A DNA stretch of 64,000 nucleotides from Bugula neritina (lineage: Eukaryota; Animalia; Bryozoa): the NCBI GenBank assembly GCA_964035545.1, contig OZ037765.1, positions 31,061,504 to 31,125,503 of the forward strand, written 5' to 3'. The translations under genes were made by a program, and so were the position numbers. The notes beneath the pieces are model-generated. The model searched no databases, was not told the origin of the DNA, and worked only from the letters and a program-made list of their open reading frames with translations. Positions 3,001 through 10,087 of the stretch are shown piece by piece; position 1 is the first letter of the stretch, and each line of letters starts with the position of its first letter.

Positions 3001-5103
3001 TGGAGACCAGAAGAAGCCACTCCAATCCACATCCTCAAATATGTAGGGTATGAGTCTCGTGAGAAGACGAATGCAGTTCAGCACTACAACCAAACGAGAG
3101 GTGATGCAACACCATTGCATTACCACAGTTGGGTGAAATATTAGTAATAACTCACTAAAGTTAAGGTCTTGTAAGGTTCACAGTCATATGTAAAAACTTG
3201 TTTTGCACATGCTCTGATAGACTTTGCAGACAAATCATTGGCTGCATCAACAGAAGAGAATTTTCACGAAAGTAACTTGAGATTAAAAATTTTTTCTAAG
3301 AATCCAACCTGTTTGCTGCTCGTGGACAGAGTTACACATGTTTTGAGCAGCTGATACAATCCTTTCAACTGCCTTGTAGCAAAGGGTAGCCATATTTGAT
3401 GGCATTTCCTCTCGCAATGCTCGCACCTGAAAATTTTTTAAACAAATTTTTGAATAACAAAGATACTTAAGTTTGTTTATCGAAGGGATCAGCCATGGTC
3501 TACGAGTTAGAGCATTTGCTTAGTAAACACAAAGTCATGGGTTCAAACCCCGACAAAGGCCATTGGTGATGTTAGGAAGAGCATCTAGTCATAATTGCTC
3601 CTGTGCCCCATCTGAATAAGTCCTTAGCCCAATTTAACAAAAAAAACCTTTGCATCAGGGGCCTCTCAGAGGGATAGTGACTATAAACATACTAAAGTTT
3701 ATTTTCAAGTTTTTCATCGAAGAAAAAGCAGAAAAATGATAAATGTAGCTAATTGATGTCTCACCTCAGTTGCAGGAATGAGCGCAAACACATCTTGGAC
3801 ACTAGTTAAGCTTTCAGACCAAAATTGGCTCCAAAAAGTTTCATTATTAGCTTCAACAGGCTAAAAACATTACATGAAGTAGCAAAGTATAAATATCACA
3901 TTGAAATAGTGAAGTTTTAGGTCATTTAGAAAACATTTTAATATTATTAGTATGAGCATAAATATTACTATCACCTTTACTTTTGAATTTTTTAGACATT
4001 TTATTTCAACATAATATTAATAGTACCAATTATTTTACTATTGGTGTTAGCTTTTTAATTTTAAATTTAATATTGATGAAAATATAAATATTATAGTTGT
4101 ATTTTAATTTAATTTTCTAATAAATATAATTTTTTTATTAATAAACTGTTATTTAACTTAATTTTTATTTTACTACAAATAATAATATATATTAAAGACT
4201 GTCACTTATACATTGGTCTACACAACGACAGGCACCGCTGTTCAACCCAATCAAAGGCTGTATCTCAGGGTCAAATCGATCAGCAGACGCCTACAAGCTA
4301 CACAATATATATTAATATTTACATAAACTGTCATGATGATTGCTTATAGTGATAATCTTCTAGCTTAAACTTAATTAGAAATTTTGTAAAATAATCACAA
4401 TGATAATCATAATGACCTAAATATAATGAATATTAATCATAATGATAAGCTTAAACTGTTAGTGTTAAACCAGTTAAAGCCAAAGTCAAACTGAAACTGA
4501 AACTAAACTAAAACTATGGCTAAATCAATTAGTATCAGTATTACTATTACTATTACTATTAGTATTACTAATAGTAATTAGTAGTTAGATAAATCGAAAT
4601 TTACTAACTCTAAGTTTAAATACTATTAGTATTACAATTAGTATTACTATTACTATTAGTATTACTATTAGTATTAGACTCACAGTTAGTAATATTCTAA
4701 TAAAATTAGTATAAGTATAAATTAAAGTAAAAGCAGAAGTTAAAGTATTAGACTTCGTATTACTAAGACTGTAACTGTAAGTTACACTGTGTAAGTGTAT
4801 TACATTTTTAATTAGTTTTACTTTTAGTTTTACTAAATTCAAATTAGTTATTACTATTACTATAACTATAAGTTATAGTATAACTATAAGTATAACACTA
4901 TAACTATAAGTATAACTATAACTTAAACTATTACTATTACTATTAGTATTAGTATTACTATTACTATTAGTATTACTATTAGTATTACTATTAGTATTAG
5001 TATTATAATTAGGTTATGCAGAATGAGAATATCTTACTTGTGTTTTCGAGGTCAGTTCAATAACTGCTTTTCTAAAATTCAACTTAGAATCTGAATTTCC
5101 CAT
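13..5103 (-). CDS. HID1: HID1 domain protein (dense-core vesicle/Golgi), 5' part; 12 exons in window, continues beyond left edge
   Basis: Exon 1 (5038-5103) encodes MGNSDSKLNFRKAVIELTSKTQ with an N-myristoylation Gly2. Later GT-AG exons encode PVEANNETFWSQFW..VQDVFALIPATE (~3766-3860), VRALREEMPSNMATLCYKAVE (~3310-3426), LNCIRLLTRLIPYIFEDVDW (~2925-3090), DLLFCPDFTV, SCEYIWAAGVG, HALPLFTSLLNVICSYDPVGYGVPYNHL, NLFVNYLSRIHREE, DFAFMLKGLTRLLNNPL, VLKSSDVLEVLVPILYHLNDARADQ and SRVGMMHIGVFIILLLSGERNFGVRLNKPY (13-164). These match the HID1 family as I recall it. Confidence 0.95.
843..1157. repeat. 13-bp minisatellite (CAGTGTTACAGTA)n in a HID1 intron, starting at the splice donor
   Basis: Direct tandem array. 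It explains the repetitive ORFs at 852, 956 and 1021. Confidence 0.95.
1370..1495. repeat. Degenerate ~20-bp tandem repeat containing copies of the HID1 splice donor
   Basis: Units such as tacttacctctactaagaca (minus strand AG|GTAAGT) lie next to the true donor at 1495. Confidence 0.75.
3485..3690 (+). mobile_element. tRNA-derived SINE (degenerate) in HID1 intron 2
   Basis: The GGG start, A-box-like TGGTCTACGAGTT and B-box GGGTTCAAACCC have tRNA spacing, followed by a non-tRNA body (cattggtgatgttaggaagagcatc...). No intact cloverleaf. Confidence 0.7.
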
Positions 5104-5921
5104 AGCTAGTGGAATAAATAGCAACCATATGGCAATGGTGAGTGTGTATATCTTTTACATACAGTAACAGGACGGGCGCAAAAAGCAATACGATGTCAAA
5201 ATAATATTATAATAATGTGCCATGTAGTAATGGTTCTACGGTTAGCTGCTTACACACTGAGCTGGAATATACCTGGAGAGGCCAAGGACGTTTTAGCGTG
5301 GCCAAATAGTTTAGCTCCGCCTTAACATGGAAAACTTAACCACGCCTACTTGTTTTGCACACAGCAGTAGTAGTAAAATCCATTATAAATGCAAGCTATT
5401 AGAGCTAATAAATTAAGGAAAACACTAAAAAATAATGAAAATTCAGCACTGTGAAGCAGGAATCAATTATTTTGTTTATTTTACTTTTGGTATTTGTAAT
5501 TTCATGACTAATTATCATTTTATGAAACATGTACCTCAAGTATATATGATGATAACTTTAATAACCTAACAAATGCATTACATATTTATTGATTAGATCA
5601 ACACATTAGTCAAAATGAAATGAAAAGCAACAGCAAAGCAAATTTCAGCCTTAGTACATGAAAACTGACAGTAAAGATAACAAGTATAAAAGTTTATAAA
5701 TAATATAAAAAACAGATGGTAAAACACAGCTTTACAAAACAGGCAAGTAACAGATTTCCTTAAACCTTTCAAAGTTTTAAATTCTGTTTTGAAAGCAATA
5801 AGAGATTAAAATAAAATTACAGAATAAACAAAAATTAATATTATATTGCAATAACAATATTTGTGATTATCTAATGTTATAATATAAATACAATAAATAT
5901 GATTAATTAACCACATCCTTA

Positions 5922-8900
5922 TTACTGGCCTCTAAACAGTACATTTTTGTTGCTACATTGCCTGAAATTTAGTTTGTGCATAGCAATATTTGTTAGTTTA
6001 GCAATGTGGTGCTGGAATAAGTCATAATAAACTTCAATAAGCAAATTTAAAAGGGAGAAATGATGATTTTCAATGCCTAATGATGTTTCCATGGAATGTT
6101 GAGCAATTCCAAATATGTCATATTTACCAATTTCTTGCTTCACATCTATTTGTAGCTGAAGTAATTTCACGAACTTTTGGCCTTTTAGGTGTTTGTGAGT
6201 GCATAAACAAGTGGTAATAACTCCATCTGAAGGTATAGTAAGCCCACCATTGTTTTTAACATGCAATAGTTTTTTGAGCTTACCATACTTGAGACTGCAG
6301 CACTCCTTGTTCACTAGAGCTTGCCTGCACTCTAGACATGTTACTTTTCTTAGTGCCTTTCGGACAACCCACCCAGAGATGTAGACAACAACATTACCCA
6401 AAACAGGGCCAGCTAAAACCCTTACTTTTTCAGCAGGTTTTAACTCATCATGAATGAAGATATCCGCATTATCTTCCTGAGAAAATGGTGGAATATAGCT
6501 AGTTGAAGCGAGAATAGCAGTTGTGTTATCTAATGGCTTAGAATTTCCTGAGTTGCCTGGATGTACACCACATCGGGTCACCAATTTTCTAAAGATAGAC
6601 TGAAAGCCAGTTACAGATGGGTTATTATTCCATCCACCTAAAACAGATATTAGGTTGACGACTTTAAAAAAATGCTTGGACATCAATTGCCTGTTCACAA
6701 TTAATGATTGGATTACGTTTACCCAGAAAAAATGATGTTTTTTAGAACACAAGCAAAACCTTGCATGCAATTAAGCCAAAAAAGTCATTTAATTTAAAAA
6801 ATGCACAATTGCTTTGACACCACAGTTTTGGAAATTTTTGAAAATTCATTATTCTTGTTTCTTGATATTCAAAAGTTGATAAAATATACTTCATATTGCA
6901 TGCATTTTAACCACTAAGCTCATGCAAAAAAATTCACTTTTCAACACAGTTGGTCCAGCCGACCATCTTAGTTGCACCTATCAAAGCAAAGTGAAAAACC
7001 GAACACCTGAAGGAAAGAGATAAGAGAGTAAGAGAACAAATGAACATGTTAACATAAGTGCATGCAGACTGGGCTTCATGCATAGCTGTTCAGAGCTATA
7101 GCATACCACAACGGCGAACTGCATTGAAGAAAAGCTCTAAATGGTCTTGCGAAAATTTATACATTAGCAGATAGTCGAGTGTTTTAGGCACCAACAGTTT
7201 CTCCACCAACCCAAATACTGTGTCAATGGCACATACAAGTCCAGTAATACAAACATGTCTGTAAATAACATAAATAGGGACAGGCACATATTAGATCTGA
7301 AATATAAGCAATTAACACTTTCTTTGTTAATAGGAAATTTACCTTTTGGTCTTGTACAGAGGTATCCCTTCATTATTCTTTAGGCCTAGCAAATATTGCC
7401 GTGTATCTTTCAGAAAAGGAGTGATGACACTGATACCATTGAGATGTAAAGGCTGCTTGTAGCCTTTAGCTATTGCTGATCGACTATTCAGGATGTCAAA
7501 CAACCGATCAACTCGCTACAGAAAAAGTAACATCAACAGAACATGGGACGATTGCAGTTACAGTATTTTAAAGAAATAAAGCCAAAAGCTGTAACAAACC
7601 CTATTTATACCAGGCTTACAGTCAACATTTTCCATCCATCTATAAAACATTAATTGTTGTCACATGATGTAGTCAATATCTAAGGATTATTTTATTTCAA
7701 ATGCTGATTAAAGAACATCTTACCGCCTCAGGGATCGTGGGGATGGGAGTGTCATGTAACTTCTGAGAAACTCATAAGCCTTTGGTGAGTAGAGATGTAG
7801 CGTTAGTGCAAATTTTTGCTGACTTTCTGAGTATTTGCCACGGAGTGGAGTGAATAGGCCATCAGGAACATCTGTATGGTAATATCAACTTTAGACAGAG
7901 TTTCAACTGAAAATGTCAAGGCGTTATTAAATTGTAAAATCATACCAGCAAAACCTTTCAACTTTTCCTCCAATTCACCATTGATCAAACTTTTTTCTCT
8001 GACCAACTTGATGCATTCTGCAAGCTTCATTTTTGATCTTTTGGCACGTCTAGTTGAATTGCTAACTTGCTTCTGTAATTGGCTAACCTTTTCTTCTAAA
8101 AACCTAACTCTTTGCTTCAAAGCATCGGGAGTGGTACTATAGCAATGATCCTGTATCATATGAAATTATTCAACTTTAATACAAAAATAACCAAATGTAG
8201 AAAAAATATATTATTATAGTATACAGCACAGCTATTTACCATAAAGTGGCAAGTAAATACATCAATATTAAGTCATAGTTAAATAAGCTATCTAATAACC
8301 TTAAGAACTACAGCTGCTGAAGTGTTCAAGCTCATTTTAGTGGTTTCAATTGAAATCTCATCTTTTTCTTCAGCACGGCGACTAGTATGAGTAGTTCGGG
8401 GAGTTCTTTTTCTCTAAAAATTGAAATATACAGATGTGCAAGCACAATAATTAATTTTATCATTCCAATGACTGTTGCATGAATATCAACTTACTATAAG
8501 TCTCTCTGGAACAGCAACCAATTCCTCTGCTGGAACAGCTCCACTTCGCAAACGCCGAGGTTGGCTTGTGCTTTCGAAAGAATCGCTATAAAAATGATCG
8601 CTACACAGTAGAGATCTTTCACTAGGTTCTTCTTGGCGGCGAGAAACTTTCCACCAAACATTCCAACGACTGAAGTCCTTCTGCTTGTTGGGAAATCTAA
8701 ATAAAAAAATACTGCACTAGCCAAAATTATTTACAAACTGATATGTTATGCTTTATCAATAGTGCAACCTATTTAAACCATAAAAACATTAAAACTTTAG
8801 GTAACCGTAAAATCCAATATCAATCAACAGAAGATTTTCAATATTTATTAAAGAGAGTAAATTAATCCAGTAATGCTTTAAAAATAATAAACTTGCTGTA

Positions 8901-9724
8901 AATAACATCAACATAATAAAGTTGTTAGCAATAATAATAGTGACATCAATATGAGTAGATATTCAGAGTGAGTCACTCACACTTCGACTTTCACATTTTC
9001 ACATTGTGTAGTTACTGTTATTGTTGATCATAATAATACTATTAGTAATAGTACTATTCATACTCATACTGATACTCGAATTATAATAACAATTTATGAG
9101 TAAGTTACTACTACTACTGAGTACCTGTACTGGTAGTAGTAGTAGTAGTAGTACTAGCAGTTGTAGTACTAGTGCTCTACTAATAACAATAACACTAGCA
9201 GTAGGCTAGTAGTACTAGCAGTTGTAGTACTAGTGCTCTAGTTTCAATAACACTAGCAGCAGGCTAGTAGTAGTAGTAGTAGCAGTAGTAGTAGCAGCAG
9301 CAGTAGTAGTAGTAGTAGTAGCAGCAGCAGCAGTAGCAACAGCAGCAGCAGTAGTACTTTTATACTGGTACCGTAAGTATAGCATTAGGCTTAGCTATTA
9401 GTATTACTATTAGTATTAGTGTATTACTATAGTACTACTATTACTAGTAGTAGACGTAGTAGAGTACTACTACTACTAGTACTAGTACTACTAGTAGGCA
9501 GCAGCACCGCTACCACAACTATTAAGCCTACTGTTACGCTAGTTAATGTATTACTTTTACTGATTTTTGTAACTAAAGCCATATACTTACTTGTGAAAAG
9601 AGATTTTTTTGTCTTTACTGTAACTGCTGTACTGGTAGTTGCGGCAATTGTATGCATAACACTGAGACCCAGTGGTCTTGCTTCTTTGACCCTTAGTTTG
9701 CTTAGGATACGGAGAATTCGACAT
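5922..9724 (-). CDS. THAP9/P-element-like transposase, 9 exons, ~627 aa, lacking the central DD/GTP-binding region
   Basis: Exons are 9591-9724, 8495-8696, 8300-8413, 7946-8150, 7724-7871, 7600-7639, 7343-7515, 7107-7258 and 5922-6637. All are GT-AG and phase-compatible (1884 nt, no internal stop). Motifs: THAP (CYAYNC..FHKFP..W..LCSDHF..AVP), DHCY, coiled coil, FALTLHLYSPKAYEFLR..LPSPRSLRRW, DRLFDILNSR, YKFSQDHLELFFNAVR-GGWNNNP and a C-terminal CxxC. Confidence 0.88.
9100..9500. repeat. (TAG/CAG)n trinucleotide low-complexity tract in transposase intron 1
   Basis: Direct agtagtagcagc runs. They explain ORFs 9419 and 9427. Confidence 0.9.
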
Positions 9725-10087
9725 GTTCAACGAAGTAGTGGTGATAGAGAACACAATTAAATAAAAATATAGTTGCTTGAGATATAAAGCAGAACAAAAA
9801 ACAAAGTTTAAAAGTGAGATTCACTCAATCGAAATGATGGACGACCGGCTCTATTTTCTCCCGCTAGAAAAAGAGCATGCTCGGGCTCACAAAGCCAATC
9901 GGCAACGAGGTTACATTACAAAGTACACCCGTACCCATTCCAGATATTATTGAGTTCATTGTGCTTACAGTCTATCAAGTACATATGTTTTACGAGGATG
10001 TGCATGTTATCATCGTTAAATTAACAAAGCGTTTGAAGTTTGCAGGCTAAGAAGTGAGTCCATTTGACTGGTTTTCCACCCAAACAT

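Follow-up and report, generated by a model that had tools for sequence, protein, structure and literature searches.

A young, mobile and internally deleted P/THAP9 transposon in Bugula neritina

The window analyzed here, a stretch of 64,000 nucleotides of the Bugula neritina genome (assembly GCA_964035545.1, contig OZ037765.1, positions 31,061,504 to 31,125,503 of the forward strand), carries at 5255–9961, on the minus strand, an element of the P/THAP9 superfamily. This element is very probably non-autonomous, a copy of an intron-bearing P/THAP9 transposon that lost an internal segment between two TAGGG pentamers and was recently mobilised in trans. Judged from its domain content, the window copy is a defective, non-autonomous member of the superfamily. 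Its frame of 627 codons lacks RNaseH_N, with both catalytic Asp residues, and positions 1–97 of the GTP-binding insertion (GBD), and therefore the predicted product cannot cut DNA.

Deletion of the catalytic core

The Pfam models were run on each exon separately, not on the joined product. RNaseH_N found no match in any of the nine exons, and the model of the GTP-binding insertion, TNP-like_GBD, was matched only at positions 99–119 of 119, on exon 7. These results agree with the original prediction, made from the letters of the stretch, that the GTP-binding insertion is mostly missing, along with the two catalytic Asp residues. The identity that it gave, a P/THAP9 element, is borne out by the target site duplication (TSD), the terminal inverted repeats (TIRs) and the Pfam matches to the THAP and helix-turn-helix (HTH) domains. 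The nine phase-compatible, stop-free exons, the 84-nt intron at 7516–7599 and the quoted motifs were all reproduced as well.

The window's own assembly, of 216 Mb, was searched at the DNA level and with the Pfam RNaseH_N model. A longer copy on another contig, L021 (C8:1.83 Mb), has 986 bp more than the window copy. The RNaseH_N model matches the genome at only four places, and its best match (E 5.8e-35) lies inside L021, exactly in the gap. There, exon 6 runs 56 nt beyond ...KPGINR and is followed by a 144-nt intron, a 586-nt exon, an 86-nt intron and a 114-nt exon ending in ...DATINFIR, after which come the same 84-nt intron and RVDRLF... The additional exons encode RNaseH_N positions 27–137 and GBD positions 1–97. 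The RNase H-like D,D,E domain split by a GTP-binding insertion is thus present in L021 and absent from the window copy. The segment missing from the window also aligns to residues 253–392 of the Drosophila P transposase (PDB 6P5A/6PE2; E 5.9e-6 with 6P5A), which is the region of the second catalytic Asp, although the similarity is distant. The 986 bp lost correspond to 756 coding nt (252 codons) plus two introns, and L021 gives a full-length product of ~879 aa, encoded in 11 exons, and an ancestor of ~5.7 kb. Full-length relatives found elsewhere agree with this size, having 859–886 aa and the domain order THAP-HTH-RNaseH_N-GBD-RNaseH_C-THAP9_C.

The pentamer TAGGG is present at both breakpoints, and the AGG within it is a codon in the same phase both times. 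The window keeps a single TAGGG, at 7599–7603, the one remaining from the two microhomology copies. The frame is still open across nine exons because the codon phase is the same at the two pentamers and because the 84-nt intron did not lose its donor. All sequencing runs were examined as assembled contigs, which show presence and not absence; the RNA side comprised three RNA-type runs from three studies. At 7599 and 7602/7603, DNA and RNA contigs alike depart from the window copy and follow the full-length form, as RNA contigs do at 7516 too. A further RNA contig, from run X10, joins ..DATINFIR directly to RVDRLF, and therefore the 84-nt intron is real in the full-length mRNA. The original prediction had described an in-frame splice join at this point. 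The frame and the intron hold, but the comparison with L021 shows that the join is a genomic deletion, not made by splicing.

The deletion removed the 986 bp between the two pentamers of the ~5.7-kb ancestor, a segment that began midway through exon 6 and extended to the last codon before the 84-nt intron. The microhomology suggests interrupted gap repair or microhomology-mediated end joining after excision, and these are the usual origin of internally deleted P elements. A collapse of the catalytic exons during assembly, raised with the original prediction, would explain the same gap as an artefact. No point in its support was found, and it is made extremely improbable by the occurrence of the same junction at seven independent loci with unique flanks and by the clean 5-nt microhomology at the breakpoints.

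Two other candidate observations on the deletion were rejected. A recurrent core-less form appeared to exist in mid-length relatives (575–638 aa), with the C-terminal exon at the same offset, but all of them have complete RNaseH_N and GBD and are N-terminally truncated gene models; the core-less architecture was not seen among the relatives checked. A 3′ breakpoint apparently shared with ~20 shorter, ~94% identical copies was an alignment effect, since their breakpoint lies 172 bp further into the missing region and represents a different deletion.

Copies of the element and their mobility

The genome search proposed with the original prediction returned one full-length copy, L021, and the deleted junction at exactly seven genomic places, on five contigs of the whole assembly. 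The seven junction copies have the full 4.7 kb each, are 99.83–100% identical and are flanked by seven different 8-bp TSDs. Similarity among them stops exactly at bases 5255 and 9961 of the window. Across these 7 × 4.7 kb, the differences amount to eight singleton substitutions and one microsatellite indel, the window copy differing from its six sisters by one 3-nt unit in the intron 1 microsatellite. In addition, one of the seven has a 2-nt frameshift deletion in exon 9. The changes that followed the deletion are therefore one substitution and one frameshift in 1.9 kb of coding sequence versus seven substitutions in 2.8 kb of non-coding sequence.

The TSD of the window insertion occupies 5247–5254 on the left and 9962–9969 on the right, with the same eight bases at both ends (TGTAAGCA when read on the minus strand). 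In X1, a DNA-type run of the same organism, a contig of 1404 nt joins 5246 to 9962, with the eight TSD letters shared, and represents the empty site; therefore, the window insertion is polymorphic or heterozygous. The seven near-identical copies, their own TSDs and the empty site together show that the deleted element is young, mobile and polymorphic.

The 3′ TIR (5255–5281), whose terminus was set by the loss of similarity among the seven copies, and the 5′ TIR (9935–9961), placed by comparison of the copies' ends, are both on the minus strand and imperfect, matching at ~20 of 27 positions. Such repeats are common to all members of the family, and being those of the whole family they are evidently functional. 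Degenerate TIRs beside an intact frame had been taken in the original prediction as a sign of selection on the protein, a view that is not sustained, as the same TIRs occur family-wide and the copies are too young to have decayed. With its ends intact, the deleted element would have been mobilised in trans by a full-length transposase. Its insertion at seven or more loci is very recent, and shorter copies may have been mobilised preferentially, as has been reported for P elements (PMC12393704). An in-phase deletion in copies that are still young is the best explanation of the open frame, which would then be a by-product.

The rest of the family consists of ~30 further copies, 85–95% identical, which are other deletion derivatives. 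The commonest of them keeps L021 positions 5070–6333 and has two other deletions. L021, the only full-length copy in the assembly, has an 8-bp TSD of its own.

Some points weigh against the account given above. Exon 1 of L021 is broken 27 nt past the start codon by a 1067-bp fragment bearing a reverse transcriptase, the other places matched by RNaseH_N are 91%-identical fragments or families diverged by 70–75%, and the assembly yielded no intact source of transposase. Full-length-type sequence does occur, on the other side, in RNA contigs from other individuals. The mechanism of deletion is drawn from microhomology only. Finally, the low ratio of nonsynonymous to synonymous divergence (dN/dS) of 0.12 between the window copy and L021 could include selection after the deletion, though selection acting on the autonomous ancestor would produce it just as well.

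The insert in exon 1 of L021 lies at L021:1234–2300 (G000 C8:1830733–1831799). It is a 5′-truncated fragment of a non-LTR retrotransposon, with a 328-aa open frame containing an RVT_1 domain and with a short tandem-repeat tail.

Selection, a possible repressor role and known systems

Over the 578 codons shared by the window copy and L021, dN was 0.0045 and dS 0.0375, giving the ratio of 0.12, and the introns differ by 1.8%. Taken from the codon comparison, this ratio shows past purifying selection on the coding sequence. Since autonomous transposase lineages give the same pattern, the selection cannot be dated to the period that followed the deletion, and the seven copies are too alike for post-deletion selection to be tested among them. 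The comparison with a sister copy suggested in the original prediction thus gave a value that is not near 1 for L021 and was uninformative for the near-identical copies.

The open frame over nine exons and the dN/dS of 0.12 with respect to the full-length copy would also suit a THAP-family host gene domesticated from a P-like transposase, as the original prediction had proposed. A domesticated gene is looked for as a single, immobile and fixed copy, devoid of TIRs and TSD. On the contrary, seven copies at least 99.8% identical carry TIRs and their own TSDs, the window insertion has an empty-site allele, and one copy is already frameshifted, so that domestication is highly improbable. For annotation, the appropriate label for the seven loci is that of defective copies of a transposon, not that of host genes of the THAP family.

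Internal deletions are common among P elements; the elements that carry them can be mobilised preferentially, and repressors are encoded by some (PMC7776569, PMC12393704). Among known systems, the window element comes closest to the KP element and to the Pdre family of zebrafish. The analogy with KP, already drawn in the original prediction, is appropriate: as in KP and other type II repressor P elements of Drosophila melanogaster, an internally deleted element with intact ends is mobilised in trans and outnumbers the full-length form, and the product keeps the THAP domain and a dimerising zipper (putative here) without catalysis (PMC7776569, PMC12393704). Unlike KP, whose product of 207 aa stops soon after the deletion, the window element has an in-frame deletion and 627 aa, and its frame keeps the HTH, the end of the GBD, RNaseH_C with the position of the catalytic Glu, and the whole C-terminal domain. 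The gene here also differs in having 9 to 11 exons.

A role like that of KP is plausible by this analogy. If the 627-aa protein is translated, it would most likely act through THAP-mediated occupation of transposase binding sites and through dead mixed oligomers (PMC7776569). It is only tentatively, though, that we entertain a selected repressor, that is, a protein which is expressed, binds the family ends by its THAP domain, poisons the transposase oligomers, and reached seven copies by damping transposition. This possibility is compatible with the structural account and differs from it only in claiming function and selection. The frame keeps THAP, DHCY, the leucine-heptad stretch and the HTH without catalysis, and retained DNA-binding and dimerisation parts without catalysis are the criteria for putative P repressors (PMC12393704). 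The promoter, the 5′ untranslated region and all splice sites are as in the transcribed full-length form, the sole full-length copy of the assembly is dead, and the only in-frame derivative seen is also the most recently amplified. On the other hand, no RNA contig shown spans the deleted junction, and at 7599 and 7516 the contigs pass into the sequence of the full-length form; the changes since the deletion are not numerous enough for a test of selection; and preferential mobilisation alone can spread shorter copies (PMC12393704). A still bolder proposal is that the protein is a selected dominant-negative of a new type, which enters the transpososome as a complete but dead subunit and whose spread shut the family down in this lineage. 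A subunit of this kind is possible because, unlike KP, the frame keeps the HTH, RNaseH_C and the C-terminal domain, but we consider the proposal unlikely.

The THAP9-like family Pdre of zebrafish is likewise a P-like transposon from a non-insect host; it has TIRs, 8-bp TSDs, one full-length copy and several internally deleted ones (PMC7776569), and its deleted copies point to recent mobility (PMC7776569). It differs in host and in sequence family; in B. neritina the insertions are near-identical, at least one is polymorphic, and the deleted form has an open frame. Human THAP9, one of the domesticated genes of P origin, has the domain order of L021, THAP-HTH-RNaseH_N-GBD-RNaseH_C-THAP9_C, and a [DE]HxY motif after the THAP domain. 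Unlike the window element, which has TIRs, TSDs and deleted copies and lacks the catalytic N-terminal half, THAP9 is single-copy and devoid of these three features (PMC7776569).

The case extends the dynamics of Drosophila P elements to an unrelated, intron-rich P/THAP9-like family, in which deletion derivatives that would stem from faulty repair out-multiply the autonomous copy and possibly encode inhibitors. This family has been active so recently that insertions remain polymorphic, and it offers a natural system for asking whether an in-frame dead transposase with all its non-catalytic domains represses transposition.

Exons, transcripts and flanking sequence

Six-frame translation and inspection of the borders gave nine exons on the minus strand, every border being GT..AG and all phases compatible, with 1881 nt or 627 stop-free codons. 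Translation places the start codon and the first Cys pair of the THAP finger in exon 1 (9591–9724). Intron 1 (8697–9590), defined by an RNA joint and by copy comparison, is rich in trinucleotide microsatellites and varies in length from copy to copy; the repeats, of AGT/ACT/GCA type, are dense at 9000–9520, where older family members are strongly diverged. Exon 2 (8495–8696) encodes most of the THAP zinc finger (PF05485, E 1.3e-9) and is supported by the RNA joint 8696/9591. Exon 3 (8300–8413) is a linker, with RNA joints at 8413/8495 and 8149–8150/8299–8300. Exon 4 (7946–8150), which is also bordered by RNA joints, was read directly and contains the DHCY motif followed by a leucine-heptad stretch, a putative dimerising coiled coil for which coiled-coil-type Pfam matches are weak. 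Exon 5 (7724–7871) encodes the P-element-type HTH (Tnp_P_element, PF12017, E 1.5e-16), with the RNA joint 7871/7946.

At the deletion, LPSPRSLRR is followed by WMENVDCKPGINR, which is the whole of exon 6 (7600–7639), cut down to 40 nt, then by the 84-nt intron at 7516–7599 and by RVDRLFDILNSR, which opens exon 7 (7343–7515). This exon holds the last 21 positions of the GTP-binding insertion (PF21788). Exon 8 (7107–7258) contains the start of RNaseH_C and the SQDHLE motif, at the position of the catalytic Glu. RNaseH_C (PF21789, E 3.6e-9) continues with its second half into exon 9 (coding 6637–5925, stop codon 5924–5922), which ends with a C-terminal domain weakly matching THAP9_C. Exon 9 has 844 relatives at E≤1e-3, and a PDB sequence search with it returned chance matches only, none of them significant to the solved P transposase chain.

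A [DE]HxY motif, of the type that binds HCF-1, is found after the THAP region in four of seven long relatives (P0084, P0087, P0138 and P0141), a frequency far above chance for a motif of four residues, and therefore the DHCY of exon 4 may be a conserved feature.

Contigs of the three RNA-type runs showed minus-strand GT..AG joints for four introns, 8697–9590, 8414–8494, 8151–8299 and 7872–7945. Most of these contigs are 95–99% alike to the element and not identical, which makes other family members their main source; the family does produce spliced transcripts. The original prediction had offered RNA reads across 7600/7515 as a check. Removal of the 84-nt intron was seen in full-length mRNA, and the contigs shown, which cannot demonstrate absence, include no joint of 7600 to 7515.

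Some further joints were observed. RNA contigs of two runs skip 96 nt at 7637–7734 and not the predicted 84-nt intron 5 (7640–7723). The extra 12 nt would deprive the HTH of its last codons, SLRR. Probably the transcribed full-length copy differs here by 12 bp, and the skip is not due to a non-canonical splice. Three exon-skipping GT..AG joints, 8495->6637 (exons 2 to 9), 8300->7639 (exons 3 to 6) and 7343->6637 (exons 7 to 9), come from a single contig each, with a short side of 26–30 nt. The form joining exons 2 and 9 would encode little beyond the THAP domain and recalls splicing-generated P repressors. Non-splice joints at 7319->8395 and 6792->7184 are present in all three RNA-type runs, with the highest depths in run X9, and indicate another abundantly transcribed deletion derivative in other individuals, which is not among the listed copies of the assembly.

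The open reading frames flanking the other six insertions were uninformative as to promoter targeting. Beside the window insertion, a Hid1-like first coding exon lies at 5038–5125 on the minus strand (MGNSDSKLNFRKAV...; Pfam Hid1 positions 1–23, E 3e-4), and RNA contigs end near 5121 and 5038 at this exon. The transposon end at 5255 is ~130–150 bp upstream of it, in the same orientation, which makes this a promoter-proximal insertion of the kind typical of P elements.

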